A stretch of DNA of 63,851 nt, counting the filler, from Guillardia theta CCMP2712 (Eukaryota > Protista > Cryptophyta), in assembly GCF_000315625.1 (NCBI RefSeq). It is 5 parts of 5 records of this genome, joined end to end, with 100 filler letters (N's around TTAATTAATTAA, not from the genome) between each part and the next. Parts side by side here need not be neighbours in the genome. Positions count along the whole stretch, not along the records: positions 29,217 to 44,962 come from NW_005434610.1; 4 more parts are not named here. One strand, 5' to 3'. How positions within the stretch are numbered: position 1 is the stretch's first letter; every line of letters starts with the position of its first letter. Below the pieces are notes generated by a model. The model saw only the letters and a program-made list of their open reading frames with translations. It had not been told where the DNA came from and ran no database searches. Made by a program: the position numbers and the translations under genes. Below, piece by piece: positions 29,117-44,962 of the stretch.

Positions 29117-29217
29117 NNNNNNNNNNNNNNNNNNNNNNNNNNNNNNNNNNNNNNNNNNNNTTAATTAATTAANNNNNNNNNNNNNNNNNNNNNNNNNNNN
29201 NNNNNNNNNNNNNNNNA

Positions 29218-31657
29218 GTTGCCTCTCCTCACCTTGGCCTTCGGTCGCCACCTACTCCTCCTCCATTCAGCTTCCTCAGCCTCAGTCAGAAGAGTTGCCT
29301 CTCCTCACCTTGGCCTTCGGTCGCCTCCACCTTCTCTACTTACCTTGAGCTCAGCTCAAGCTCGGTACGGGCTCGCCCCGTCTTCTTCCTCGCCCTCGCC
29401 TTGCTCTTCCTCCATGTCTTCCTCTTCTTCGCCATCTTCCCTCATCTCCACTCGCAGTCGGTCCTTCTTGTCCACCTTCAGCGAGCAGGCCAGCACATGC
29501 ATCTCTGCGAATTTACTCAGTGCTATGAACAGGAAGCTAAGAGATCGACGCTCTATGTCGTCGCTCTCCGCCTCCTGCTCAAGCTCAGCAGCTGCCGTTG
29601 CCCGTGGCGAGAACGCGCTGCCCCTCCTTGCCTTCTTGCTCTCTCCTTGCACGCGAGTCCAGCGCTTGCTCTGCAGCCACTTCCCCAGCTTCTCCTTGAG
29701 AACGTTGCGCCCAACTCCCTGCTCCTCTGGCATCTTCGCCCACTCTCCCAGCGACATGAACTCCAGGCTCCCCGGAGAGTAGAAGGTGTCGTGGAGGTTG
29801 CCAACGGCCTTGTCCAGGACCAGCTTGATCGGCTCGCTCGTCCCTGCCTCGTTCAAAGAAGCTGCATCTTCGATGACTGCTGACAGCTCGCTGACGAGCT
29901 GCATGTCCTCTTGGCTTGACGGAGATGCTGCCTCCATTGTGATCCTCTCCAGGTCTGTAAACTCCAGCCACTCTCCCTCGCTCTCCTCCTGTCGCTGCGC
30001 TGCGTCGCTGGTGCCCCGCTGACCAGCCGCCTCAGAGTCAGGCTCCTTGTCGAAGCCGACTGCTTCGAGCTTGGTGGCTGCGCCTTCGAGATAGAAGGGC
30101 AGCTCCTTCATCATGCGTCGAGCATCCTCCGTGGAGCCGAGGAGGATGCATAGCTTGGACCCGTTCCAGGACTTGGTGTTCAAATCCTCCTCCATGTCGA
30201 TGCCTTCAACGTTGATCTCGAGCCTGTTAGCGATCTCCAACAAGACTCTCTTGACTCTTGCGATAGACGTGTTGCCGCCGTTGCACAGCCCCTCCATCTC
30301 CTTCCTCGTGAAGCGACCAGATGCCGCCGTCGACTTGATGATGATCTTGATCTCCTTGCCGTCCTTGCCGCCTGCCTTCTTCTGCATCCTTGATGCCTTC
30401 TTCAACTTATTTCTGGACACAAAGCGATCGGCTGTCAACTCGACTGCGAGCGCCTCTCTGATCTTCGGGTCCTCGCTGAACAGAGTCAGGTGTACTCCCT
30501 CCATCGCTTCGCTCTCTCGGAAAGCTCGAAATGCTGTATCATTCGCCTCTGGGCAGCTCGAGGAGACGATCCACTCCACCTCCCTCTGTCTCCAGATGAC
30601 GTTGGCCCCTACAGCGATGAAGCCTTTCTGACCTAAGCCTTTGTGGACTTGCTGTCCTGGCGCCCCAGCGACCAGCATGCCTGCCAGCGGCTGGAGTTGG
30701 ACCGCTGCAAGGGACTGGCGCAGCAGCTGATAGCGATAGACGGCAGCTATCTCAGCCGTTGTCATGCCGCCCAAGGTTAGCAGGTGAGTCAGCTCTGCCA
30801 AGCTGCCCCCTTTGCCCCAGGGTCCTCTCTTGGCTCGAATCTTGAAAGATCGATCGTGCACGATGCTCACATGTACAGCTGTGAACTTGCGACCATCGAT
30901 CGCGAAGTCCTCTCTTCCCTGCCAGAGCTTCTCCGCTTGTGCATTGCGGAGGAAGGAAACAGTCACCGGGATCTCCTCAGCACTCGCTATCTCGGGTCTA
31001 TACGGAGCCTTCCACATGATTGCTTTACTCTCTTGCACTGAGTCTACGATCAGTCCGCTCTCTTCAAATTTCTTCTTCAGCTTTTCTTCATGGTTGACAT
31101 ACACCGAGGAGATGCCCAGGAGAGTCATGGAGATGAAGGAAGTCACCTCGTTGCCTGCTGAGGCGGTGTATGTCTCGACCTTCTCCTTCTTGGCTTCTTC
31201 AATCTGCTGCATAAACCACTCTCTGGATGCGTCACTCCATCCAGCCATCGCTTCTTGTAGAAGCTCACGTCGTGCCTGCTGACATGTCGAGCGGATGGCT
31301 TCTGCGATAGCGTCGGGGGTGCATCCCTCCACAGCCTTGCAAGCCTGGGCTGTCCTGCTGTTCGGATAACGCTTCGCGAAGCTCTTCACCCTCTCGACGA
31401 GATCAGCTTCGAGGACAGAGGCATCCACAAGTCCGCTCTGCGTGTATTGGCATGATCTCCGATACAGCAGGTTGCGAACATTTTCATCATACTGAAGAAC
31501 CATACTTAGAAAGCTATTTGAAGTATACAAACCTCTTGCTTGCAGCTTCCTTGGCGCCCTGGCGGCTTCCCCTACACCTGACGAGGAGCCATGCTGCCGA
31601 AAATAACGGCGCCTCTGCCGAAAATAACGGCGCCTCTGCCGAAAATAACGGCGCCTC
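29218..31657 (-). mobile_element. Telomere-inserted retroelement D: ORF1 (29356-31530, about 724 aa) followed by about 76-bp 3' repeats, no ORF2 seen
   Basis: ORF is colinear with ORF1 39756-41867 (YPxSRT, WxAP, GxLAExxHLL, GRFTRxE, SWNG, LxLDxAxxxLxDxxxSPG). The 5' end abuts telomeric repeats via three 21-bp repeats. The 3' end is lost in a gap. Confidence 0.8.
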
Positions 31658-31690
31658 CTAACCCTAAACCCTAACCCTAGTAGTAGTAGT
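31656..31690 (-). repeat. Telomeric tract (mixed TTAGGG/TTTAGGG) fused to the (ACT)n tail of element A
   Basis: CCTAACCCTAAACCCTAACCCT|AGTAGTAGTAGT, with AATAAA (minus strand) at about 31696-31701. Confidence 0.92.
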
Positions 31691-32246
31691 CGATTTTTAT
31701 TAGAATGCTAGAATAGTCGCATCGGGTACCTTCCCGGTCTAGTCTAGTCTAAATGGGTTCTCACGCTTGGCAGAGCGGCCCTTCTTGGATGGCCCGTTGT
31801 GGCATCCAGAGTTCTATCGCTGTTCCGCTGTTTCTGTTGTTTCCATAGTCCTCCGTTCCGAGCCGCCGGTGCCGTATCTCCTCCGGGCCCGGGTTGACGG
31901 TTTCAGTGTAACCGTCCACCTTTCTATTTTTTGCGCTAAGTCCATGTCCCTTCCCTGCCTGCCGCTTGTGAAGCTTCCCCATCGGTCTGTCCTCGTTGCC
32001 CTTTCCCCTGTCGTCATCCATCTGTCTCCTGTGTCCTAGCCCCTTCCTTGCCATGTTGGTTGTTTTTCGCCTGTGAGGCTTCACCTTCGGTCTGTCCGTT
32101 GACCGTTGCCCTTTCGTCTCCCATCTGTCTTCTGTGTCCTTGCCCCTTCCCTGCCATGCTGATCCTGGTTGCTTGCTTTTGAGGCTTCCCTTTTGATCCT
32201 TCCTCGTTGATCTTTACCCAGTCATCTTCCAACCATCTTATATCCT

Positions 32247-35200
32247 TCATGCTTGTTCTCTGTTAGTCGTGTCTCCTCGTCTCCTTGAGGTCCACAGCAT
32301 GTGTTGCACTTCGAGCAGCTGGATGACTATCTTGGTCATGGCTCTGTCAATCATATCCTCGTCCATGAGCAAGTTCCGGAAATTTGTGGTCCATTCCCGC
32401 TCCATAATACTGCCTCTCACTCCTGCAATGAACGTGGCTTGTAAGACCTCTGTGTTGTCGCTCCTGCTTGTCATCTCTGCCCGCAGTGCTGCATATTTCT
32501 GTTCTTTCTCCTGAAACTTTGCTTTCAGGTTTGCCAGACTGCTTCCCTCGCCCGTGAACTCTGAAGTTCTCGCTATCTCCACCAGCACAATGCGATTGCT
32601 CCCTCTGAAGTAGCAGAGCCCATCTGGTATGAGATTGCCGTGCTCTGGTGCAGTCAGTCCTAGCCCTGTCATAGAGTTGATTGGCGTTTGCCACCAACTC
32701 TCCTGTTCAACACTTTTCTTCTTCCAGCTTTCTTTCAGGCATCCCTTGATTGTCTCCATTACTCTGTTGTGTGCCAACGCGATCATGAGCTCAAATTCTT
32801 TGCAGGCTAGCTGAACATGCACCCAGCTTTCTTCCCTGCCTTCGCACCATGGGCAACAGGGGGATGTCGTCTTCTTCCACTGGAACAGCTTTTTCCTCGT
32901 TGGTGCTGACCAGGTAATGGCTTGGATAGCTGTCCGAAGTACTGATCCGCGACACCTCTGTAAGGCTCGACCTAGGATCCTTCTGCCCACTTGTGGTTCC
33001 AGGAGAAAGGTTTCCGTCAAGGTGAGGGGGGCTTCTTTCCTCCTCAGTTCCAGTTGTTCTTCTCTGATTATCTTATCCCATATTTTCAATCGATCCATCC
33101 CCGGCTTGAAGTTCTCTTCGTCTGCAATGCAGAATCCCAAGTCGCTGTCGATGAGGGCCCGTTCCCACGTGGAGGAGAAGGAGGATTTTCCCTTGCGGGC
33201 TTCTTCTGCAGCTTCTTGCACTACGGTGTGGTCTGTGATCATAGAGAGGTTGATCTCAATGCCCTCCCGCTGAAATTTGCTCAGGCATTCCTGCAGTCTT
33301 CCTGCCAAGTCGTGTACGAGCTCGTCTTCATACTGCATGGTAGACCATCTGAGGGTGTCCGTAAGAAAGCGATGCATTCGGGTTGATTTAAAGAGGACGA
33401 AGATTTTCCTGATTGTTTTCTGTTTGCCTCTTTGTTCCCAAATCGCTTGTAGGAGTATGCAGAGTGCGATGGTATGTGCTCTGATGACGCTGCATTTTCC
33501 GTGTATCTTGATCGCTCCGCGTTCCTGCTCTCCTTCCTTGTCTTGCGTGCTGTATCCTATCGACATTGATCGACCCTTCCTGTTTCGTGATATGTCGCCG
33601 TGGATTGCGGACCACACTTGGTTCCTGTTCTTCTCCTGTTTGGCCGAGGCTTGATAGTTTTCGTTTTGCTTCCTTCGGTATTCTTGTAGCTCCTCCTGTT
33701 CAGGGATCAGGTGTACTGTGAGTTGGACAATTATTCTCTCTTGTTCCGACTCCTTGCAGTAGACAATCAGGTCGTCTTGTGACTTCCTGAGGCTCCGATC
33801 GCCCGTCCTCCAGAAATTTGCAGCGTAGCATATTTCTGATCCTTTAGGTACCTTACCGACTAGCATGAAGCCGTCAGGGATTTCTTTCCTGAAGCAAGTT
33901 TGGTTCCATCCGATCAAGATTGTTCCAGACTCGCATGCGGCGTAGCTGAGGTATTGTTCCTGTTGGTCGATCCATATTATTTCACGTCGAACCTCGTCTT
34001 CCTGCAAGCTATCGGTTGCGGCCTGGATTGTCGGGTGATAGAGGGTGGGCCAGTTGCTGAACTGTTTTGTTTCAGCGAGCATCCCCAAGTGTTCTAGAAA
34101 TTCGTACGACAGCGGAAGGCCTTGTTGTCTATCTCGAATTTCAGCCATGGCGGTGGTTAGATGTTCCCACCAAGCTTGCGAGTTGAGTGAGCTGTTATGT
34201 GTTTTGCTGATATACTTAGCAATTTGCAGTAGGATCTCTGTCTTCTCTGGGTTCTTGGCTCCATCGTCATCTTCTTTCCTCGCAAATGGCGCCGAGCGAA
34301 GGGAAGGTTCAGCTTCTTTGATGTCTTGTTCTTGGCCCGTGTGACTTCTGGGCCGGTCCATGATTGCTATGTCGCCCTTGATTTTGAAACTTTCCTTACC
34401 TTTTAGGATTAGGTGTTCCTGTTGATCCAGATTGCCTAGTAGTTTAGCCATGAGGGATCTTGTGTTTGCATGAGCTGGGTGTGGCCTTCTCTCTTCTGCT
34501 GCTTCCCGATGCTTTTTGGATGTCTCCTCCCGGTCCTCCTCTGATTGCGGGTGTGACTTTCGTTTTCGGGTTGTAGCACTATCCTGCGAGGCAACCTCTC
34601 GTCTTTTCCTCTTTGTTCCTGATGCTCTGTTGACGCTGCTTACCCAGATGACATTTTCTTGTAGCAGTTGCATTACGATCCCCTCCGCCTCCTCGCGTTG
34701 CCTTGGGAAAGGCCAGAGCTTCCTTGGCAAATGCAGTTCTTCGTCAGCGATAGGTCGTATATTGCGTAGCAAGGAGAATTGGAGTTTCGGGAGTTGCCTC
34801 CATAAGGCTTGGAAGGTCGTCCAGCCTTGTGGTCTGTCGCTGTCGTTCAAGTTTGCCACCATATCCTCCATCCTATGAAGGAGGGAGATGCTTCCAGGTA
34901 GGTGACCTGCTTCTATGTGGGCCCAGCTGATCCTCGTGTTTAGTTTTTCCGCCAGCCAGACTGCTAAAGCTTCGGGTCCCCGCACCACATCACGCTCCAT
35001 AGTTCGAAAATTCATTTCTCTTTGGAGCTCGAGGATTGTTTGGCATCCCCATTCCGCAAACCAGTTTCTGAGTTTAGATATCAGTCTATCTTGGATGTCT
35101 CCACCATGCTTACTATTCACTTCTCGTTCGATGTATCGTAGCGCTGCTCGCCCTAGGATTGGGGCAGGATGAGGGACCTGCAGCCCTCCATTCTCTGTTG

Positions 35201-38200
35201 GCAGGTAGAATATACCATTCCCTGTACTTTTGCTTAGGCCTAACGCTTTTTTAAAAGCTCGTATCCACAGTTGATCTAATTCTTGTAGGTCTCGCCAAGT
35301 CCATCCAGTCATGACTGCGGAGTAGCGAAAGACGTTGAGAATTCCAACTTTCACCAGGTAAAATTTTTGCGCAGGAGTATAACTCGACGAGCTGATATTG
35401 TTGATCAGTTCTTTGGTTTTTTCAAAGACGTATGCTCGTTCTCCCCAAGTGAAAGGGCAGCCCTTTATTCTTCGTCTTTCTTCCTTCCACAGAGAGATGC
35501 GATAGCCGAGATATTTGAACGGTTTAGTAGCCGGTAGGGCTTCGACAGGTTCCCCCATGACCGTTATTTTGTTCGCACCAGGAACCTCTCCCTTGCGAGC
35601 ATAGTCGAAGCTGGTTATCTCTGATTTCTTATTGTTGATTTGCAGTCCTGACCATTTGCAGAAGGAATCCACCACTGCTACCAATTCTCGCATTTCTTTC
35701 ATCGTGTGTGCGATGAGTACCATGTCATCGGCGAAGGACAGGTTGTTTGTTGTTCCTGTGCTGCACTTGTCCAATTGCCTAGAGAGGATGCATAGCACCA
35801 AGTTGGCCAGTTGTGGGCTACTTGCTCCACCTTGAGGCAGCCCGATCATTAGAGGTATTTTCCCTGTGTTGAACTCGTTTGTTTGTATTTGCAGTTCGAC
35901 TCCACTGTTGCAGGCTATCACAGTTCTAATGTCCTCAGGATGGAAGCCTAGGCTGTTCATTGCCTGCTCGACCACCTCGATTGCCACATTGTTAAAGAAG
36001 TTCGCAAAGTCCAGGTACAAGAGAATTAGGGACGTTTTGGCCTCTTCTGCTTCTTCTACGATCGAGATCAGTCGATGAGCCTGCCGACTTGTGCTTCTGC
36101 CTGGACGGAACCCCTCCTGGAAGTTTGTGAGGACGTTGTTTGCTTCTACTGTCTTACTCAGACGATGCGCCAGGATTGCCTGAACCAGCCGAGTAAGCGT
36201 TGACATGACGCATATAGGCCGCATGTTTTCGAGAATGTGACAGAATTGATTTTTTGGCAGGAGGCGTACTCTCGCTGTCTTGTTGAGAACCTCAGCTTTG
36301 CCTTCTAGGGCTGCATTGACTAACTTGCCAACTTCCTCTCGGCATGCTGGTGGCAGCGCTCGCAGCACTTCGTTCGAAATGAGGTCAAGTCCTGCAGCCT
36401 TTCGTCTCGGCGCCGAGGCGAGCCAGACATCAATCTCTCCCGGTGCCAGGGGTCTGGTGATTTCCTGTTGTTGTCTCCTTGAAAGCTGCACCCCCTCAGG
36501 CGGTGTGATCCGTCTTGGGGCCACGGTTGTGAACGACTTACATTTTGTGCAGTACGGGGTCATCCCTCCCCCTCCGATGGTCTCGTCGCTTGAGTCAGCC
36601 AAGGGGAGCATACATCCGATGTTTGAGCATTTTGAGCAGGTCCCTTGTTTCGTGCATGCGTTGACGCTGAAGAAGAATCGTGTATGGTCCGCGTCCTCAA
36701 GCTCTCTAACCTTCTGCATTGGGAGATGATCCGTGAGATCACGGTATCCTGCTATCTCCCATGTTGTTTTATCCGATTCTTCCAGTGCTACAATTGCTTT
36801 CGTGATTGTGTTTGCAGGTAGCAGTGATAGAAAGAGCCAGTCATCTGTCCCCTCTCGCTCGATCCCAATCATCAGTTGCTGGTTTGCACTCCAAAATGCT
36901 CTAACACCCCTCGTGTCTTCGCTAGATAGGGTTGCTTCGAGTTGGTTGATGAGCTCGTCGGCATTGTCGACTATCTTGCCGAGCAGTCTAAGAGCCAAGC
37001 CTTTGTGGCAACGAAGGGAGTTAGGGTGTTTTTTCTTGATGTCTTGACTTATCATCGGTTCTTTGGGAGTGAAATCATTCTTGCGTCCCATTGCATTCTG
37101 GGATTCACGGCTGCCTACCGTGCCAAGCCGTGTTTGCTGCTGTTGGCAGATCTCTTGGAAAACTTCGTTGTTTTGTTCTTCACATATCGTTCTGAACCTC
37201 TCGATCTTAGTTCGCAATTCTCGTTGTAATGTAGCTTCCGTAGGTACTCCAGTCGCTGGTCTTTTCTGTGATGCTTCCCTAAGTTTAGTCCGCAAGTTGC
37301 GGATCGATCTCTTCAAATCCATTTGTTCTTTGTTCGCGTGTCGCCTCCCTCCCTTTCTGATTTTTACCTCCTTTAGTGGTAGAGAGTTGGCGAGCATCTC
37401 ACAAATGTTACATTCTTGCGCCTTAGCTCGCATGTCTCGTATGTTTGCATCTAGTTGTTGCGCCCATTCGATCTTCTTCTCCTCCCACGTATCGCGATCC
37501 AGCACCCATCTGCTTTTAGGGGTTTCCCCCCTCTTCTGTCGTGAATTCATCTGATGCACTTCCACTCGTGGGATTAGCTGCGTCTCCTCGGATGTGAACT
37601 TGGTGTGCACTTGCACCACCAGGGCTCTGTGATCAACTGCTCCCCCTATCACACAGCCGTCGACCGTCCACGATTGAAGGGAGATGTTGGGGAAGTTGTC
37701 CTCATTAGTTGGGGGGTGGATAGCGAGGACTGCGTCGAGTTTGGCTTCTATCAATTCTTGTTTGTACCATGTTGAGAAGGTAAATGTTGTCCCAGTCTCG
37801 CTGATCTGTTCATATGAGAGTGTACGGTGTGCGGAAAGGTCTGCCAGGAATTTCTCGAATCTCTCATCTGCTTTTGCGGTGATAGATGAGGGGGAATATC
37901 CTCTCCGCATTGGTGTTGTTGTGTTGGTTCTTGCTGCATTAAAGTCTCCGGCTATGATGTGTGTCTCTCTCGTTCCCAGAGCGAGGTGTAGCAGCTCTGC
38001 CCACAGTTCCCCTTGCTCTCGAATCGCATTTTCCGCCGGTACCTGATGGAGGTTCGTGACTACGAAAGAATTTTTCCCTGTTCCGACTTTGATCGAAAAC
38101 ACTCGGTTTCGATATTTCTTTTCTTTGTTGCACGCCTGAGCGGCATGGGAAGGGGAAGGCGAGAGGGAAGCGTGGACCAGCGTTACCAACCTCAGGTCTC

Positions 38201-39746
38201 CTTTCCCCTTCTTGGCATTGATCTTCGCAGGCCCCAGGAAGATTCTGTAGCAGGCCCAGTTCTCCTTGATCATCTTCCTTAATTTGTTCTCGTCGCGGGC
38301 CGAGACCCTTACCTCTTGTAGTAGCACAACCCCAGGTTGGAAGGACTGGATTAAGTATGCGAGGATGTGCTTGAGAACAAAGTGATTGCAACCATTCACA
38401 TTTTGTGAGATGAGGAAACCTGGGTCTGAGCTTTTTCGATGCATCTGTGCCCAATCATCGCCCCTTTGCTCCTCCTGCCTTTTCCCCCTCCGCTCCTTCC
38501 CTATCTGGGAGGTTTTCTCTCCTGAGTGTGCATTCTCCTCCATTTCCTCACCAAAAAGTCTTGGTTGGGGCTTCGTGGTGGTCGCCTGCCGCTGGATTGC
38601 GATCGGCTGTACCTTCTCCTCAGGCTTTGCCGTCGAGGTCATCGGCCGCTGGATTGCGTTTGGCTGTACCTCCTCCTCAAGCTTTGTCGTCGAGGTCATC
38701 AGCCGCTGGATTGCGTTTGGCTGTACCTCCTCCTCAAGCTTTGTCGTCGAGGTCATCAGCCGCTGGATTGCGTTCGGCTGTACCTCCTCCTCCGGCTTTG
38801 TCGTCGATTTCAAGCTCTCTTGCACCCTCGCCTCCTTCGGCAGGGATCGCAGAATTACCTGGGCCGTTTCCTCCATCTTCTCCAGATGGGTGAGAGCTTC
38901 GATCAGTTGTGTTCTGGTTTGCATCAGCCATTCTTGCGGAAGTCTTAGTCTTGTCCTCGTTTCCATCGTTGCTAGCCAGTCTTGATTTGTCTCGCAGAGC
39001 AGTAGGGTGTGAAGGATAGCGAACACTCCGCAGTTGAAGTTATCTTCCTGTTGGAAGGCTGAGCACCACTGTATCTGCCATGGGGCATTGGTCTGATCGT
39101 CAAAGATGTGTTCGATCACTCCGATTGTCAGCTCAGCCATTTCTCTTGCTCCGTGCTCCCCCGTTGTTGCAAGATTCCTCGCTCCCTCGATCCCTCGTGG
39201 GTCCCTCGTTGTGCTCGTTCTGTCCTCGCAGAGAGGGTCCAAGATGTACGCGCATCGCCGATCATATCTTAATGCAATTAGAATCCAGTGGTTGCTGTGG
39301 ATGATAGTTGGAAACAGGAAGGTGTGTTGCTCATCTCTCAAGCTGCTGAGGTGAAATCTGTTCCCGACTCTCAAGCGGGACGCCTCGTCTCGCAGACTGG
39401 ATATTACCCTTGGCAAGAAGATGATGTTCCGCGTTTGCTGGTCCTCGTGGGCTCTCCCTTTGCGTACCATGTGTATTGCTCGTCCTCCTTGAAGAGCCTT
39501 GCTCATCTCATTGAGAGTAACTTCGATCATGTTCTCGCATAAAAATCCGCTTACTCCTCGATTGTTCAGGGCAGTGATGCCAAATTCCTTGTCGCCTCGT
39601 TTGTCTGACCATGGGATCTCCTCGATCCAATCAAAAAAATATAATGTTCTATCTACATGTTGCGTTTCCTTTGAAACCGTTTCCCTCTCCCCCCCTTGCC
39701 TACTCCCGGCACTCCCCCCTTCCTCCTCCCTTCCTCCTCCTGTCAT
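32247..39746 (-). CDS. ORF2 polyprotein: Ulp1/C48 protease - APE endonuclease - Cys cluster - reverse transcriptase - degenerate RNase H - CCHC Zn finger - restriction-like endonuclease
   Basis: Ulp1: NHWIL...ILDPL...QQEDNFNCGVF. APE: SQNVNG, LLQEVR, AGDFNA, LDAV, DHRAL. RT: KAAGLD, RPICV, QEGFRPGRST, LDFANFF, GLPQGGASSP, FADD, GLQINNKKS, FKYLG. Zn finger: CPWC...HVQLAC, AHN. RLE: IPDGL...LVEIA...KEQKY. Confidence 0.95.
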   Translation of the reverse strand: MTGGGREEEGGSAGSRQGGERETVSKETQHVDRTLYFFDWIEEIPWSDKRGDKEFGITALNNRGVSGFLCENMIEVTLNEMSKALQGGRAIHMVRKGRAHEDQQTRNIIFLPRVISSLRDEASRLRVGNRFHLSSLRDEQHTFLFPTIIHSNHWILIALRYDRRCAYILDPLCEDRTSTTRDPRGIEGARNLATTGEHGAREMAELTIGVIEHIFDDQTNAPWQIQWCSAFQQEDNFNCGVFAILHTLLLCETNQDWLATMETRTRLRLPQEWLMQTRTQLIEALTHLEKMEETAQVILRSLPKEARVQESLKSTTKPEEEVQPNAIQRLMTSTTKLEEEVQPNAIQRLMTSTTKLEEEVQPNAIQRPMTSTAKPEEKVQPIAIQRQATTTKPQPRLFGEEMEENAHSGEKTSQIGKERRGKRQEEQRGDDWAQMHRKSSDPGFLISQNVNGCNHFVLKHILAYLIQSFQPGVVLLQEVRVSARDENKLRKMIKENWACYRIFLGPAKINAKKGKGDLRLVTLVHASLSPSPSHAAQACNKEKKYRNRVFSIKVGTGKNSFVVTNLHQVPAENAIREQGELWAELLHLALGTRETHIIAGDFNAARTNTTTPMRRGYSPSSITAKADERFEKFLADLSAHRTLSYEQISETGTTFTFSTWYKQELIEAKLDAVLAIHPPTNEDNFPNISLQSWTVDGCVIGGAVDHRALVVQVHTKFTSEETQLIPRVEVHQMNSRQKRGETPKSRWVLDRDTWEEKKIEWAQQLDANIRDMRAKAQECNICEMLANSLPLKEVKIRKGGRRHANKEQMDLKRSIRNLRTKLREASQKRPATGVPTEATLQRELRTKIERFRTICEEQNNEVFQEICQQQQTRLGTVGSRESQNAMGRKNDFTPKEPMISQDIKKKHPNSLRCHKGLALRLLGKIVDNADELINQLEATLSSEDTRGVRAFWSANQQLMIGIEREGTDDWLFLSLLPANTITKAIVALEESDKTTWEIAGYRDLTDHLPMQKVRELEDADHTRFFFSVNACTKQGTCSKCSNIGCMLPLADSSDETIGGGGMTPYCTKCKSFTTVAPRRITPPEGVQLSRRQQQEITRPLAPGEIDVWLASAPRRKAAGLDLISNEVLRALPPACREEVGKLVNAALEGKAEVLNKTARVRLLPKNQFCHILENMRPICVMSTLTRLVQAILAHRLSKTVEANNVLTNFQEGFRPGRSTSRQAHRLISIVEEAEEAKTSLILLYLDFANFFNNVAIEVVEQAMNSLGFHPEDIRTVIACNSGVELQIQTNEFNTGKIPLMIGLPQGGASSPQLANLVLCILSRQLDKCSTGTTNNLSFADDMVLIAHTMKEMRELVAVVDSFCKWSGLQINNKKSEITSFDYARKGEVPGANKITVMGEPVEALPATKPFKYLGYRISLWKEERRRIKGCPFTWGERAYVFEKTKELINNISSSSYTPAQKFYLVKVGILNVFRYSAVMTGWTWRDLQELDQLWIRAFKKALGLSKSTGNGIFYLPTENGGLQVPHPAPILGRAALRYIEREVNSKHGGDIQDRLISKLRNWFAEWGCQTILELQREMNFRTMERDVVRGPEALAVWLAEKLNTRISWAHIEAGHLPGSISLLHRMEDMVANLNDSDRPQGWTTFQALWRQLPKLQFSLLRNIRPIADEELHLPRKLWPFPRQREEAEGIVMQLLQENVIWVSSVNRASGTKRKRREVASQDSATTRKRKSHPQSEEDREETSKKHREAAEERRPHPAHANTRSLMAKLLGNLDQQEHLILKGKESFKIKGDIAIMDRPRSHTGQEQDIKEAEPSLRSAPFARKEDDDGAKNPEKTEILLQIAKYISKTHNSSLNSQAWWEHLTTAMAEIRDRQQGLPLSYEFLEHLGMLAETKQFSNWPTLYHPTIQAATDSLQEDEVRREIIWIDQQEQYLSYAACESGTILIGWNQTCFRKEIPDGFMLVGKVPKGSEICYAANFWRTGDRSLRKSQDDLIVYCKESEQERIIVQLTVHLIPEQEELQEYRRKQNENYQASAKQEKNRNQVWSAIHGDISRNRKGRSMSIGYSTQDKEGEQERGAIKIHGKCSVIRAHTIALCILLQAIWEQRGKQKTIRKIFVLFKSTRMHRFLTDTLRWSTMQYEDELVHDLAGRLQECLSKFQREGIEINLSMITDHTVVQEAAEEARKGKSSFSSTWERALIDSDLGFCIADEENFKPGMDRLKIWDKIIREEQLELRRKEAPLTLTETFLLEPQVGRRILGRALQRCRGSVLRTAIQAITWSAPTRKKLFQWKKTTSPCCPWCEGREESWVHVQLACKEFELMIALAHNRVMETIKGCLKESWKKKSVEQESWWQTPINSMTGLGLTAPEHGNLIPDGLCYFRGSNRIVLVEIARTSEFTGEGSSLANLKAKFQEKEQKYAALRAEMTSRSDNTEVLQATFIAGVRGSIMEREWTTNFRNLLMDEDMIDRAMTKIVIQLLEVQHMLWTSRRRGDTTNREQA
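38590..38808 (-). repeat. 57-bp in-frame tandem repeat (about 4 copies) in the protease-APE linker
   Basis: TTKLEEEVQPNAIQRLMTS repeats. Confidence 0.9.
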
Positions 39747-39755
39747 GATTCGGTT

Positions 39756-41867
39756 TTAGAGTTGAGAGGCAACCTCTCCCTCTTGGTTGCCACTCTCCTC
39801 TTCCATCTCCAGTCCCATCTCCTCCTCTGCCTTGCTCAAGAGAAACTCAATTTCGTCTCCCGAGCCTACGCTGCCTTGGTAGGTTAGCGTGGCTGTGAGA
39901 ACTAATTTATTCAGGGCAAGAAACAACAAGTCAGTTCGAAATTCTTTTTGTTGTTTCTCCCCTCCTCTCCCTGTTGCTTTTGCAAAGGCTCCCTGGCGTC
40001 TTCTTGATGCTACCGTCTCCCACGCATGCTGCTCGCTTACTCTTGCAATCTTACTCTTCAAAACTTGCATGTCGTCGTCCTGGGTTGCCGAGGATGATTC
40101 CGCCCATTCCTTCAGCGTCGGAAAACATGCATTTCCAGGAGATGACAAGCTGTCGTACAGGCCGACTATGGCTCCATCGAGCCTGAGTTTGCAAGCTTGG
40201 TTTTCTGCACTCTGTCCCTGATTGACAGTCTCCTCCAGAACTTTGTAGATGTCTTCGAGGACCACGTTTGCCTCTGGTTCTGGGATGTTGATCTCATTCT
40301 CGATCCGTTCGAGATCTACCTGAGCCCAAAGAGGCTCTGTGGGGGGTTCTGTAGCGATCGCTTCCCAAAGGTTGGCACTGCCTGGCTCTAGGAGAAGAAG
40401 TTTCCCCGCCCTGTCCCATGGCGCAAAGGACCTGAGTATGTCGATCGCCGTTTCTTTTTCTGAGAAGCTGAGCACTAGATGTTCACCGTTCCAGCTGTTG
40501 GTCTCGACATCTTCCTTCGAGGAGATCTTGACGATGTGCTCAGCCGCTGACTCCTTCCAGCTCGCCACGATCCGTCTCAGTCCTCGAATTGTCATGCCCA
40601 TAGAGAGATCCTCCCCGTCGCAGATCTGTTCAGCTTCCTCTCTTGTGAACCTTCCCTTCTGTGCTTTACTCTTGACCAGCACCTCATAGGTCACTCTTCG
40701 TGGTACTGCTCCTAGCGCGTCGGGCAAGAAGTCCAACCTAATTGGATGCTGTCTCGTTACCCTGGTGATTGCACTAACCTGAGTAGTGAACCATTTGAGG
40801 ATCTTTTCATCTTCCGACATCAGTCCGAGGTGTATGCTTCCTCCATTCCTGTCATCTCCCTCAAACATCCGTAGCGTGGTGCTCAGGACGTCCGTCGAAG
40901 AGCATCTCGCAATCCAATCGATCTCTCTTCCTTGTCGTATCTCGTCCACTCCGGCTGCTGCGAAAGTGCGTTTGTTGGGCTGACCTTGAGGTCTCCTCTT
41001 CGTCTTGACCTCTAGCTGCATGCCCGCTTCCGGCTGCACCTCCAACACAGCTATTCCTTGTTGCAGCAGGTGTTGACGATAGATCTCCGTAATCCCAGCT
41101 GAGTTCATGCCATTCATCTTGAGGAGGTGAGAGAACTCAGCTAGGGCCCCCGCCTTGCCAGAGTGCTTATCCTTCTGTGGCCTTATCTTGAAGGAGCAAG
41201 GATGCTTCGAATGCGCGTTCACCGCGCGGATCATCTTTCCGTCGATCCTGAAGTTCGTCTGTCCTTTCCACAGCAGTTCTGCTGCGTCGTTCAATTGGAG
41301 TGTTGCCACGACTGGGATTTCATCCACTGTCGGAATCAAATCTTTCTTGATCGGGGCTCTCCACGAGATGCATTTCTTGCCCTGCTCCTCGTGCACCAAG
41401 AGTCCTTGATCCTTCAACTTCTCACACAGTACCTCAACTTGTTTTATGTACTGGGTAGGAACTCCGAGGATAGCCATGGTAATCAGTTTACCACTCTCGG
41501 GGGACGCTCCTGAAGCATCGATGCAGGCACTCTTGTCTAGTACCTCCTGTTTGTCTGCGTTCCATGCAGAGACATACCACGACTGTCCTTCTTCCCCCCA
41601 TTCTTTGATGGCATCCTCCTGGCTCCTGACTTCAGCATGTTTGCAGGTCTGTCGAATGGCTTCGGCTAAGGCGTTCATCGAGACTTCCTTGGACTGCAAG
41701 GCTCTGCCTGTCCTGCTCTGAGGGTACTGCCTGACGAAGTGTTCCAATCTTCGGATCAGCTCTCCTAGCGAAGGTGCTGAAGGTGTCGTGTCCTTGTTTA
41801 GGAACTGGGAAACTCGGACACGAGCAATCTGTTTCCTTTCCTCTTTGGATAGATACCACATGATCAA
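39756..41867 (-). CDS. ORF1 of element A (703 aa, no family recognised)
   Basis: Lies directly upstream of ORF2 and is homologous to the ORFs at 29356-31530 and 43914-44962. Confidence 0.85.
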   Translation of the reverse strand: MIMWYLSKEERKQIARVRVSQFLNKDTTPSAPSLGELIRRLEHFVRQYPQSRTGRALQSKEVSMNALAEAIRQTCKHAEVRSQEDAIKEWGEEGQSWYVSAWNADKQEVLDKSACIDASGASPESGKLITMAILGVPTQYIKQVEVLCEKLKDQGLLVHEEQGKKCISWRAPIKKDLIPTVDEIPVVATLQLNDAAELLWKGQTNFRIDGKMIRAVNAHSKHPCSFKIRPQKDKHSGKAGALAEFSHLLKMNGMNSAGITEIYRQHLLQQGIAVLEVQPEAGMQLEVKTKRRPQGQPNKRTFAAAGVDEIRQGREIDWIARCSSTDVLSTTLRMFEGDDRNGGSIHLGLMSEDEKILKWFTTQVSAITRVTRQHPIRLDFLPDALGAVPRRVTYEVLVKSKAQKGRFTREEAEQICDGEDLSMGMTIRGLRRIVASWKESAAEHIVKISSKEDVETNSWNGEHLVLSFSEKETAIDILRSFAPWDRAGKLLLLEPGSANLWEAIATEPPTEPLWAQVDLERIENEINIPEPEANVVLEDIYKVLEETVNQGQSAENQACKLRLDGAIVGLYDSLSSPGNACFPTLKEWAESSSATQDDDMQVLKSKIARVSEQHAWETVASRRRQGAFAKATGRGGEKQQKEFRTDLLFLALNKLVLTATLTYQGSVGSGDEIEFLLSKAEEEMGLEMEEESGNQEGEVASQL

Positions 41868-41967
41868 ACAACCGTTTCTGCACAGAAAAATATCCTGTTC
41901 AGCACCCTAGCTCGCAGGGATCCCCTCAAACTGCAGGGGAGGAGAGCATGTCTGTTACTCCAGCCCT

Positions 41968-42047
41968 CCTAGACCCTAAACCCTAAACCCTAAACCCAAA
42001 ACCCTAAACCCAAAACCCAAAACCCTAAACCCAAAACCCAAAACCCT
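41968..42047 (-). repeat. Telomeric tract with TTTAGGG and variant TTTTGGG units
   Basis: CCCTAAA and CCCAAAA units are interspersed. Confidence 0.93.
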
Positions 42048-42762
42048 GCTGTCTTCTCTTGGCTTCCTAAGCCTCAGTCAGGAGAGTTGCCTCTCCTCAC
42101 CTTGGCCTTCGGTCGCCACCTACTCTACCTCCATTCAGCTTCCTCAGCCTCAAGAGAGTTGCCTCTCCTCACCTTGGCCTTCGGTCGCCACCTACTCGTC
42201 CTCCATTCAGCTTCCTCAGCCTCAGTCAGGAGAGTTGCCTCTCCTCACCTTGGCCTTCGGTCGCCACCTACTCCTCCTCCATTCAGCTTCCTCAGCTTCA
42301 GTCAGGAGAGTTGCCTCTCCTCACCTTGGCCTTCGGTCGCCTCCACCTTCTCTACTTACCTTGAGCTCAGCTCAAGCTCGGTACGGGCTCGCCCCGTCTT
42401 CTTCCTCGCCCTCGCCTTGCTCTTCCTCCATGTCTTTCTCTTCTTCGCCATCTTCCCTCATCTCAACCCGCAGTCGGTCCTTCTTGTCCACCTTCAGCGA
42501 GCAGGCCAGCACATGCATCTAGACGAGATCAGCTTCGAGGACAGAGGCATCCACAAGTCCGCTCTGCGTGTATTGGCATGATCTCCGATACAGCAGGTTG
42601 CGAACATTTTCATCATACTGAAGAACCATACTTAGAAAGCTATTTGAAGTATACAAACCTCTCGCTTGCAGCTTCCTTGGCGCCCTGGCGGCTTCCCCTA
42701 CACCACGCGTGCAGCCATGGTGCCTGAAATAACCGGCGCTGTGCCTGAAATAACCGGCGCTC
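42048..42762 (-). mobile_element. Internally deleted, 3'-truncated copy of element D
   Basis: About 42310-42519 matches 29295-29504 and about 42522-42705 matches 31396-31578, implying a deletion of about 1.9 kb. It carries about four 72-76 bp repeats and two 21-bp 5' repeats. Confidence 0.88.
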
Positions 42763-42830
42763 CTAAACCCTAAACCCTAAACCCTAAACCCTAAACCCTA
42801 AACCCTATTATTATTATTATTATTATTTGA
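42763..42830 (-). repeat. Telomeric tract (TTTAGGG) x about 6 fused to an (AAT)n tail
   Basis: (CCCTAAA)nCCCT|ATTATTATT...GAGTTTATTAGA. Confidence 0.93.
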
Positions 42831-43277
42831 GTTTATTAGACTCTTAGTCGAGAATTTCATAGCTAAGAACTATTGCTCTTTGCTCATCTCTCGCCTAATG
42901 ATCTGTCTAAAGGGGTTCCCAACCTTGGGAGGTTGGCCCATTGTCCTATAGGCCCCTTGGGCCTGGGTGCTTCCGTATTAGATATTTTCAGTGACGATGT
43001 CCTCCGGGCCCGTCTCAGGTCCGATCCCGGTTTTCTTCCCTAATTTCGCAAAGTGTCGTTGCGCCATGCCTCCCCTCCCTCCTGCCCCTTCCCCCCCCAG
43101 TTGCCCACCTCTTCCCTCCATGACCTTTAGCTGTGCCTGCCTCCTTGATGCTAGGCTTGTTTTCCTTCCCTGCTTGTGCTCCATAGGAGGCTTGCCCCTG
43201 AGCCGTGCCTGCCCCCAGCGGACCAGGTCTACTCTATTCTCCTTCTTGCCGTCCATAGCATGTGCTGCTTGCCCCTT
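42807..43277 (-). mobile_element. 5'-truncated retroelement B (3' UTR only)
   Basis: Has AATAAA plus (AAT)n tail and patchy similarity to the 3' UTR of A (GTCTAAA.GGGTTC, CTCCGGGCCCG). Telomeric repeats lie on both sides. Confidence 0.75.
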
Positions 43278-43328
43278 CTAAACCCTAAACCCTAAACCCT
43301 AAACCCTAGTAGTAGTAGTAGTAGTAGT
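43278..43328 (-). repeat. Telomeric tract (TTTAGGG) x about 4 fused to an (ACT)n tail
   Basis: CTAAA(CCCTAAA)3CCCT|(AGT)7. Confidence 0.93.
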
Positions 43329-44962
43329 TGAGTTTATTAGAATGCTAGGTAGGTTGCATGGCTTGTTATCACCTTGCTCTATTCTAGTCTAACAGGGATC
43401 TCGTGACCTGGCAGTTCGGCCCGACTTGGCTGGCCCTTATGGCAGCCGTGCTTCTGCTCTGCTCCCTCCTCTGATATACTTCAGTGAGTTTCCTCCGCCG
43501 GCCTTGGCCTGGGTCGTCCGTGCTTTCAACTTGTGTTGCTTCCTCGGCTCCGACACACCTTGGCGGTCTCGGCCGGCCTTCGGCCAGTGAGTGAATGAGG
43601 GATAAGGACAATCAGGAGATAAGGTGAATGAGGGATAAGGACAATCAGGAGATAAGGTGGTAGGTGGAATGCGTATGGGTCCCTGGGACTCACGTCCCTT
43701 CCCCCGGGCCTCGGTCCGGACCGGGCCCTAGAGCCCGGCCGGCCTCCGCCCGGCCTCCTCCTCCCGGCCCCCCTCCCCCCTCCCCCACCGGCTTACCTGC
43801 CCTTACCTTCGTTGCTTGCCCCATGTCCACCTCATTTATTTCTTCCTCCTTCCCCCCATGGGGCCCACAGCTCCGCTCCGCCTCTTGTCCACCTCTAAGA
43901 CTTGACTCGAGCCTCAAGCGCGCGAGGGGCCTGCACCGGCCTCCTCCTCCACGCCCTCGCCCTCCTCCGCCTCCATGTCGACTTCCTCCCTCATCATCAG
44001 CCGCAGTCGGTCTTGCTTGTCGACCTTGCCCGTGCAGCTCAACCCATGGTGCTCAGCAAATTTACTGATCGCAAGAAACAAGAGGCTTACAGATCGACTC
44101 TCGATGTCATCGCTCTCAGCCTCCTGCTCGAGCGCATCAGTCGCTGCTGCCCTTGGAGAGAAGGCGCTGCCCCTCCTCGCTGCCTTGTTCCCTTGCACCC
44201 GTGTCCAGCGCTGCTCGCCGAGGTACGCTCTGAGCTTTTCTTTCAACATGTTTCGCTTCGATCCCAGCGTCGGCGTGGCTGCCCAAGCTCCGAGCGTCAT
44301 GAACTCCACGTTGCCCGGCGAGCAGAAGGTGTCATGCAGCTTGCCAACACTCTTGTCTAGCTCCAGCGAGATCGGCTTGCCAGCTAGCAGCTCCTCCTCT
44401 GATGTCTCCAAGAGCATCGTCGAGAGGTCGAGCAAGACCTGTTGATCGACTGGCCCTGACGGCGACGCTGCTTCCATAGTAATCCTGTCGATGTCGCTGA
44501 GCTCCAGCCATCCAGCGCCTTGCTGCTGCCCTTGGGGCTCTTGGGCTTGCTCCTCGCTCTCTTCTTCCTCCTGAGAGCTGACAGTGGGTTTGAACCCCAC
44601 CGCTTCCAGCTTGACTTCCAGGATCCCTTCCAAGTAGAAGGGCATGTCTTCCATCAAGCGTCGAGCCTCTGCCTTGGTCGCCAGGGAGAGAGCTATCAGG
44701 CTCCCATCCCAGCTGAGCGTGTCACGATCCTCCTCGGCCTCGACGCTGACCAGCTTGAGGTTCATTCTTCTTGCTAACTCCAACATGGCTCGCTTGACTC
44801 TCGTGATCGATGTGTTACCTCCTCCGCACAGCGCTTCCATCTCCTTCCTCGAGAAGCGGCCTGTGCTCATGCTTGACCTCGACTTGATCTGTACTCTGAA
44901 GCTGCTGCGCCCGCATGATCTCTCTCGCGAAGTGCCTTCCTTTGCTAGCGATCTTTCCCTAG
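43308..44962 (-). mobile_element. ORF1-only retroelement C (ORF1 3' part 43914-44962, about 590-bp 3' UTR, tail); 5' end in gap
   Basis: The ORF is a clear paralog of the ORF1 C-terminus of D. Its stop at 43914 is followed only by UTR, AATAAA and (ACT)n. Confidence 0.85.

Follow-up and report, generated by a model that had tools for sequence, protein, structure and literature searches.

A probable telomere-repeat-specific Dualen retrotransposon in the cryptophyte Guillardia theta

Results

Structure of element D and its two open reading frames

The window analysed here is a 63,851-nucleotide stretch of DNA from Guillardia theta CCMP2712, within which one piece (positions 29217-44962) is a head-to-tail array of non-LTR (LTR, long terminal repeat) elements, all on the minus strand (Table 1). 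Short tracts of the heptamer TTTAGGG, the telomere repeat inferred for cryptomonads (PMC3622300), part neighbouring elements of this array, with 15 matches to a two-unit pattern versus none by chance. The subject of this study is element D, a 10,290-bp retrotransposon with a first open reading frame (ORF1) of 701 amino acids (aa) and an uninterrupted second one (ORF2) of 2,499 aa. Our analysis indicates that D is probably an autonomous non-LTR retrotransposon that is intact, belongs to the cryptophyte Dualen group, and is specialised for insertion into (TTTAGGG)n.

The domains of ORF2 follow the order C48 protease, apurinic/apyrimidinic endonuclease-like (APE) domain, Cys-rich segment, reverse transcriptase (RT), dead ribonuclease H (RNase H) fold, zinc finger of the CCHC type, and restriction-like endonuclease (RLE); as judged from the sequence, all catalytic residues are present except those of the RNase H. 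A first-pass annotation had already proposed a two-ORF, telomere-repeat-specific element with Ulp1, APE, RT, RNase H-like, and RLE domains, an intact His-Asp-Cys Ulp1 triad, both endonuclease motif sets, and a degenerate RNase H (about 33150-33620) with IHGD in place of TDGS. Every one of these domains was found by Pfam, profile, or predicted fold, and the more specific claims are borne out by the residues and junctions described below.

For the protease, Pfam Peptidase_C48 gave a sub-threshold match to the ORF2 of D alone (E 0.14) and a match at E 2.8e-9 to P0001, a relative that is 45% identical over 83% of ORF2. A nine-member family profile of the domain found yeast Ulp1 (1euv) at E 2.3e-16, with SENP1, 2, 5, and 8 ranking below, and the four residues listed in Table 1 occupy the catalytic columns, forming a His-Asp-Cys triad with the oxyanion Gln at the level of the sequence profile. 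The APE domain (Pfam Exo_endo_phos, E 1.7e-7) and the RT (RVT_1, E 4e-35) both lie above the Pfam cut-off, and zf-RVT gave a sub-threshold match on ORF2. In D, N449, E478, D601, N603, D671, D705, and H706 fall in APE columns that either do not vary among nine relatives or vary only between E and D, and the family motifs (asparagine, glutamate, GDxN, aspartate, and DH) are all kept. The Cys-rich segment upstream of the RT may be a zinc ribbon. At the C terminus, 260 residues align with 37 relatives, and the resulting 38-sequence profile matched three R2 proteins of solved structure over their CCHC and RLE (E 1e-17 to 7e-22), with the family motifs PDG, hhE, and K..KY aligning to PD, D, and K..KY of R2. 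Since the APE catalytic residues and the RLE motifs (CCHC, D, E, and K) are kept, both endonucleases look competent, and neither looks dead. No Pfam match to a SET domain was found in ORF2 or ORF1.

The RNase H fold sits between RT and RLE, the place expected for Dualen/RandI elements. In long relatives, Pfam detects an RNase H at precisely the corresponding position, where the motifs TDGS, AEL, TDS, and H…NE.AD occur, and a profile-profile comparison of these domains with the segment of D and its closest kin gave a probability of 77% (E 2e-5, 148 columns). The predicted model of the segment (pLDDT, the predicted local distance difference test, 73) consists of three β-strands, a helix, a strand, and more helices, and matches RNase H1 structures with a Foldseek E of 9e-8, a model that leans toward the RNase H fold through the true RNase H relatives in its input alignment. 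When the profile of the segment was searched directly against solved structures, nothing was found. The D-E-D-D catalytic positions read H2049, A2090, K2120, and E in D, and they are lost alike in D, P0001, and P0002. However, the segment is 46% identical between D and P0001, close to the identity of the APE domain. From these residues, the fold is catalytically dead and, since it is as conserved as APE, kept as a structural module only. A host enzyme or strand displacement would then have to clear away the RNA strand.

In D, ORF1 and ORF2 share a frame, with a 9-nt spacer after the ORF1 stop (window 39744-39758), whereas in L001, the metagenomic locus of a 45%-identical relative, the ORF1 stop and ORF2 start overlap out of frame as TAATG (2441-2445), the same stop-start overlap as in the silkworm element SART1. 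Both arrangements suggest translational coupling. GGG occurs within the first seven residues of ORF2 in D, P0001, and P0002, and at residues 39-41 in P0003. Since Ulp1-type enzymes cleave after Gly-Gly and the two ORFs of D are in frame, the N-terminal GGG of D (aa 1-11, window 39714-39746) could conceivably be a processing site for the C48 protease, a proposal to which we give low weight because the ORFs of L001 overlap out of frame. The further idea that stop-codon readthrough yields an ORF1-ORF2 fusion that the protease would cut at this GGG stays speculative, since the frames agree in D and not in L001.

Table 1. Features of the array piece and of element D, in window coordinates
Feature	Position	Strand	Remarks
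Element A	44962-43309	-	3' part of ORF1-only element: ORF1-like gene and 600-nt 3' UTR (untranslated region)
Telomere tract after A	43278-43308	-	
Element B	43277-42808	-	5'-truncated 3' UTR fragment of L001-like autonomous family
Telomere tract after B	42762-42807	-	
Element C	42761-42048	-	Small type-E copy with internal deletion
Upstream target tract of D	41968..42047	-	11 telomere-type heptamers, end ...TCTAG directly before first base of D
Element D	41967-31678	-	Autonomous retrotransposon under study, 10,290 bp
D 5' UTR	41862..41967	-	106 nt; starts with single 19-20-bp unit (…GCTGGAGTAACAGACA)
D ORF1	39756..41861	-	701 aa and TAA stop
D ORF2	32247..39746	-	2,499 aa and stop, uninterrupted
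C48/Ulp1-type cysteine protease domain	38877..39638	-	aa 37-290; His153, Asp170, Gln233, Cys239
57-bp tandem repeat	38588..38807	-	3.9 copies; encodes 19-aa repeat in protease-APE linker; copy number varies among copies
APE domain	37581..38426	-	aa 441-722; catalytic residues intact
Cys-rich segment	36534..36662	-	aa 1029-1071; CxxC…CxxC, upstream of RT; kept in P0001, P0002, P0003
RT with thumb region	35067..36464	-	aa 1095-1560; FADD at 1338-1341
Degenerate RNase H fold	33147..33629	-	aa 2040-2200; profile match and predicted fold
CCHC zinc finger and PD-(D/E)xK RLE	32250..32936	-	C2298, C2301, H2310, C2315; D2375, E2390, K2417
D 3' UTR	31678..32246	-	569 nt; 103-bp x1.9 repeat at 31963-32158; (CTA)4 tail at 31678-31690
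Downstream target tract of D	31658..31677	-	GGGTTAGGGTTTAGGGTTAG; element E directly after
Element E (type E)	29217..31657	-	Cut by piece edge; 21-bp x3 5' repeats, then 724-aa ORF1
Two GT..AG introns	36503..36817	+	36503-36552 and 36744-36817; contigs of RNA-guessed runs only

Insertion at a single position of the telomere repeat

We examined 26 junctions between elements and telomere repeats, taken from the window, from L001, from two further copies in the assemblies of another study (L007 and L008), and from the G. theta scaffold ends L006, L009, and L010. All 13 junctions that lead from telomere into element end in …TAG, which is extended to TTTAG in 11 and to TCTAG (before D) and GTTAG (before E) in one each, and in three of them the first base of the element is other than G, which fixes the boundary. 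Where the 3' end of an element meets telomere repeats, the repeat starts with GGGTTT at 12 junctions and with GGTTT at the thirteenth. The elements therefore share a single insertion register within (TTTAGGG)n, and since seven registers are possible, this agreement cannot be chance. The junctions are most simply read as the outcome of a C-rich-strand nick at CCC^TAAA, which would prime reverse transcription, and of a cut through the G-rich strand at TTTAG^GG, with a 1-bp duplication as the result.

At the scaffold ends (L006, L009, and L010), host genes are followed by (TTTAGGG)n and then by elements that run 5' to 3' outward with their sense strand on the G-rich strand; consequently, the 3' ends of the elements face the chromosome end. 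As for Bombyx SART1, this is the orientation that would be expected of an internal endonuclease nick, the opposite of Drosophila-type end addition. The tract upstream of D mixes TTTTGGG and TTTAGGG units as a 21-bp super-repeat, and the other tracts are pure TTTAGGG.

The ORF1 family and its partner elements

No Pfam family matched the ORF1 of D. Its predicted model resembles proteins with three to four tandem RNA recognition motifs (RRMs), e.g., Prp24 and raver1 (Foldseek E 5e-5), and the product is probably a multi-RRM RNA-binding protein. The ORF1s of A, D, E, and L001 are mutually homologous, with 26-54% identity (29% between E and D). With the ORF1 of E as query, about 35 "hypothetical proteins" of G. 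theta CCMP2712 were found at 50-100% identity, together with one from Hanusia phi, and the G. theta gene models are spread over about 30 scaffolds. Complete elements on G. theta scaffolds, 2.5-2.7 kb in length, carry ORF1 only and have telomere repeats on both sides. These ORF1-only elements have in common with D the last ~110 nt of its 3' UTR (TTTAGAC…CTAGCATTCTAATAAA…), after which (AAT)n or (CTA)n follows, and they probably borrow the RT of the autonomous element in trans. Among the distant relatives L003, L004, and L005, the upstream ORFs have no detectable homology to the ORF1 family of D or to one another, and we therefore claim no ORF1 that is conserved across the whole group.

At their 5' ends, all families open with 18- to 21-bp tandem repeats of variable copy number, which may carry the promoter; the unit of 19-20 bp found once in D occurs in three to four copies in other family members. 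We considered a type-E ending like that of copy C, in which 76-bp repeats run straight into TTTTGGG repeats, and dropped it because complete copies of type E in L009 terminate with the common 3' motif and (AAT)n. Copy C is thus atypical.

A fragment that is 100% identical to the G. theta ORF1 family (P0199) is filed as Heterocapsa arctica in a transcriptome collection and is probably cryptophyte material carried over into the culture or library. At the end of G. theta scaffold JH993018.1, the terminal array contains a 4.4-kb stretch (L006:2892-7160) flanked by a 5' fragment of ORF1 on one side and an almost complete ORF1 on the other. Its coding content comprises Ephrin_rec_like repeats and two domains, one F5/8 type C and one glycine-rich, and capture of a host gene, rearrangement, or misassembly could explain its presence.

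Other copies, selection, and transcription

The ORF1 of D is 94% identical to G. theta GUITHDRAFT_111706, and the end of scaffold JH993018.1 has 96-98% nucleotide identity to the window. L007 and L008 are full-length copies that match D at 97.4% identity across 10.3 kb; in each of them the two ORFs are open, and there is one 19-aa repeat unit fewer than in D. Between copies, the ratio of nonsynonymous to synonymous differences (pN/pS) in ORF2 is 0.20, and the counts of synonymous to nonsynonymous changes are 12:0 in the RT, 19:5 in the APE domain, and 8:3 in the RLE. Given a copy divergence of 2.6% and a pN/pS of ~0.2, the lineage is active now or recently was.

Contigs of four public runs cover a compared stretch of 6 kb (window 36000-41990). 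Depth is highly irregular in the two runs that we guessed to be RNA, where one contig also spans ORF1 together with the first third of ORF2; this is suggestive, though not proof, of transcription of the element. In addition, contigs of these runs (X5 and X11) skip stretches of 50 and 74 nt, neither a multiple of three, whereas those of the two DNA-guessed runs do not. The skipped stretches have GT..AG borders on the plus strand, which points to a spliced transcript running antisense to ORF2.

About half or more of the sampled words of the element also occur in several metagenome runs of freshwater, aquatic, and runoff origin. G. theta is a marine alga, and these matches could come from close relatives or from contamination.

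Relatives and published elements of the same architecture

When the C-terminal 800 residues were used as a profile in an exhaustive search, 186 proteins were found. At least five long relatives (P0038, P0059, P0080, P0084, and P0089), all metagenome-derived, combine Pfam C48 and RT with a matching CCHC-RLE C terminus; the APE domain reached the reported E-value in P0038 and P0089, and RNase H did so in P0059, P0080, and P0089. P0038 additionally bears a SET domain. In the RT tree, D forms a long-branched clade with P0001 and P0002 (100/100) that is sister to P0003 (92/91), and the family of D stands apart from the APE-RT-RNase H outgroups (99/97). The relatives with 45% and 25% identity (the latter P0003) are largely collinear with D in domain order. 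A search of a protein atlas with the part from RT to the C terminus returned generic RT clusters only.

The sister lineage of the telomeric clade, P0003 on the European Nucleotide Archive metagenome contig L002, carries an OTU-like DNCLFDS motif in a segment at its N terminus, a C48-like domain in which Ser replaces the catalytic Cys, and RNase H and RLE in a separate downstream ORF.

The first-pass annotation had regarded Ulp1 with dual endonucleases, a separate ORF1, and site specificity as unusual. For Ulp1 with two endonucleases, this view did not survive, since Lescot et al. (2016) describe a cryptophyte element, Dualen-1_GCr, that encodes SET, C48 peptidase, APE, RT, RNase H, CCHC, and RLE (PMC5029228), with SET given for this one element, and the architecture recurs in the metagenomic proteins. 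The grouping of the RT, which had been proposed as a check, likewise speaks against novelty, as it clusters with relatives of matching architecture (metagenomic proteins, as far as compared). The literature background of the annotation proved accurate: a Josephin-like protease is known from Chlamydomonas Dualen (PMC9977147, PMC8557442), and Ulp1 from NeSL/Utopia (PMC4640811). In the literature searched, which excluded Repbase, we found no report of telomere-repeat specificity, of a dead RNase H, or of autonomous and ORF1-only arrays at G. theta ends. Therefore, the architecture was known already, and the telomere targeting, the ORF1-only partners, and the dead yet conserved RNase H are apparently undescribed.

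Discussion

Placement of D in the cryptophyte Dualen group

The presence of APE and RLE in one element is the mark of Dualen/RandI, and D carries both. It resembles the cryptophyte Dualen elements (Dualen-1_GCr of Geminigera cryophila and Dualen-5_CCu; PMC5029228) in its order of C48, APE, RT, RNase H, CCHC, and RLE, in its one long ORF, and in its cryptophyte host. D differs from them in several respects: it lacks the SET domain of Dualen-1_GCr (which the metagenomic relative P0038 has), its RNase H is without catalytic residues, its separate ORF1 belongs to a large family, and it inserts strictly into telomere repeats, whereas no target specificity is reported for the published elements (PMC5029228). 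With Chlamydomonas Dualen/RandI (Kojima and Fujiwara 2005; Dualen-4b_cRei, PMC9977147), D shares APE, RLE, RT, RNase H, and a cysteine protease, which is Josephin-like there and C48 in D. Both have short tandem-repeat 3' tails rather than poly(A), namely, (ATT)n in RandI/Dualen (PMC3747384) and (CTA)n and (AAT)n here. However, the Chlamydomonas insertions are dispersed, with target-site duplications of median 900 bp, which that work suggests both enzymes yield jointly, whereas D uses a fixed site with an apparent duplication of ~1 bp.

Several points weigh against this placement or against parts of the reading built on it. The RT tree comprises metagenomic relatives and APE-RT-RNase H outgroups; Dualen membership therefore rests on the paired endonucleases, the order of the domains, the type of tail, and these metagenomic relatives. 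The contigs of the more distant relatives (L002-L005) yielded no telomere or other tandem repeats, so that we rejected the notion that telomere targeting is general to cryptophyte Dualen and regard it as a trait of the sublineage of D. The nick positions are ambiguous by 1-2 nt where an element begins with G or a tail ends in TA, and element C ends without the conserved 3' motif. For the shared 3' end, RNAalifold gave a weak consensus hairpin of six pairs, two of them covarying, and we claim no structure for it. Finally, the quality of the ORF1 model is moderate (pLDDT 68; pTM, the predicted template modelling score, 0.49), and the runs behind the transcription hint are only guessed to be RNA.

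Proposed mechanism of insertion

If D is a telomere-specific Dualen element, its cycle may proceed as follows. A transcript would start in the 5' tandem repeats and be translated into ORF1p and ORF2p, the latter by reinitiation, given the stop and start that lie 9 nt apart in D and overlap in L001. The two proteins would bind the conserved 3' end of the RNA, and one endonuclease would nick the C-rich strand at CCC^TAAA, freeing a 3' OH as the primer for reverse transcription, which would start at the (CTA)n or (AAT)n tail. The other strand would then be cut at TTTAG^GG, one base away, leaving the 1-bp duplication. Since such a nick is internal, telomerase repeats would persist on both sides and the arrays would grow, and ORF1-only elements with the same 3' end would be copied in trans. 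For the C48 protease, the targets we consider are the element's own protein, a SUMO-like modifier, and a host factor.

A known parallel is provided by SART1 and TRAS1 of Bombyx mori (PMC7265360), which likewise insert in an endonuclease-dependent manner at one position of the telomere repeat, form telomeric arrays, and have two ORFs, with the sense strand of SART1 also on the G-rich strand. Unlike D, these elements have APE only, no RLE, no protease, poly(A) tails, and an R1-clade RT, and they occupy the TTAGG repeats of an insect host. D thus works like the SART/TRAS long interspersed nuclear elements (LINEs) in its fixed telomere-repeat site but is not a member of that group, since RLE and C48 are present and the tail is (CTA)n.

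Alternative explanations

The same loci could be read as arrays co-opted for the maintenance or capping of G. theta chromosome ends, with the ORF1 family as telomere-associated proteins. The HeT-A, TART, and TAHRE elements of Drosophila form head-to-tail terminal arrays in which autonomous elements stand beside abundant Gag/ORF1-only partners that need RT in trans, and antisense spliced transcripts are known for TART. Several of our observations are reminiscent of this system: in every locus examined, the elements occupy the scaffold end, immediately distal to ordinary genes; the ORF1 gene models reach some 35 on about 30 scaffolds; ORF2 is under purifying selection; the ORF1-only partner parallels HeT-A; and the spliced antisense transcript recalls TART. 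However, telomerase repeats are absent from Drosophila, and the elements there join the chromosome end with 3' ends toward the centromere, whereas the G. theta elements are all separated by telomerase repeats, which points to an evidently active telomerase, and have their 3' ends outward. The latter is the opposite of end addition and fits endonuclease-mediated insertion as in Bombyx SART1, with host benefit unproven, and copies with truncations or internal deletions, as seen here, are typical of LINEs that live as parasites. Consequently, we consider co-option improbable.

Another possibility is that D descends from an RLE-type element of the NeSL/Utopia kind and gained its APE secondarily, independent of Dualen. 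NeSL/Utopia elements share with D an N-terminal Ulp1-like protease, a C-terminal CCHC and RLE, and insertion specific to repeated sequences (PMC4640811), and the best match of the RT among solved structures is an R2 protein (E 1.3e-22, versus 1.8e-18 for L1). They differ from D in having no APE, in targeting spliced-leader or U2 snRNA (small nuclear RNA) genes, and in an RNase H that is absent or upstream of the RT. By contrast, the RT of D clusters with CCHC-RLE proteins, most of which have C48 and several APE and RNase H, an order published as cryptophyte Dualen, and an RNase H between RT and RLE together with trinucleotide-repeat tails are Dualen/RandI traits. NeSL/Utopia elements are RLE-only, and D, with an intact APE under purifying selection, is not one of them; a separate gain of APE thus seems very unlikely.

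That the dual-endonuclease ORF is an artefact, either an assembly chimera or nested LINEs reading through by chance, might be suspected because terminal repeat arrays are hard to assemble and because ORF1, a host-like gene, and ORF1 follow one another oddly in L006, yet the chance of this is negligible, as it is already refuted by the recurrence of the 10.3-kb structure in two other assemblies (97.4% identity), by the contigs of four public runs, by the largely collinear 45%- and 25%-identical relatives (P0003 having RNase H and RLE in a separate downstream ORF), and by substitutions between copies that are mostly synonymous in both nuclease domains.

Implications for G. theta and for Dualen elements

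A more far-reaching extension of the telomere-specific Dualen reading would be that a community of autonomous and ORF1-only elements builds, and partly maintains, the ends of G. theta chromosomes beside telomerase, and that C48 opens the way to the ends by acting on telomere or silencing factors that depend on SUMO. We hold this to be a long shot, but if true, the community would be a convergent counterpart of Drosophila HeT-A/TART that coexists with telomerase.

For the annotation of the G. theta genome, the results mean that dozens of "hypothetical proteins" are ORF1 copies and that scaffold ends are element arrays, which a repeat annotation reporting no Dualen in G. theta overlooks. As far as we have found, no Dualen lineage with strict target specificity has been reported before, nor any retrotransposon that targets the telomere repeats of a cryptophyte. 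The partnership of autonomous and ORF1-only elements at chromosome ends would have arisen independently of insects, and the 7-bp target with its 1-bp stagger offers a natural system for separating the roles of two endonucleases, the cuts of which could be mapped in vitro.

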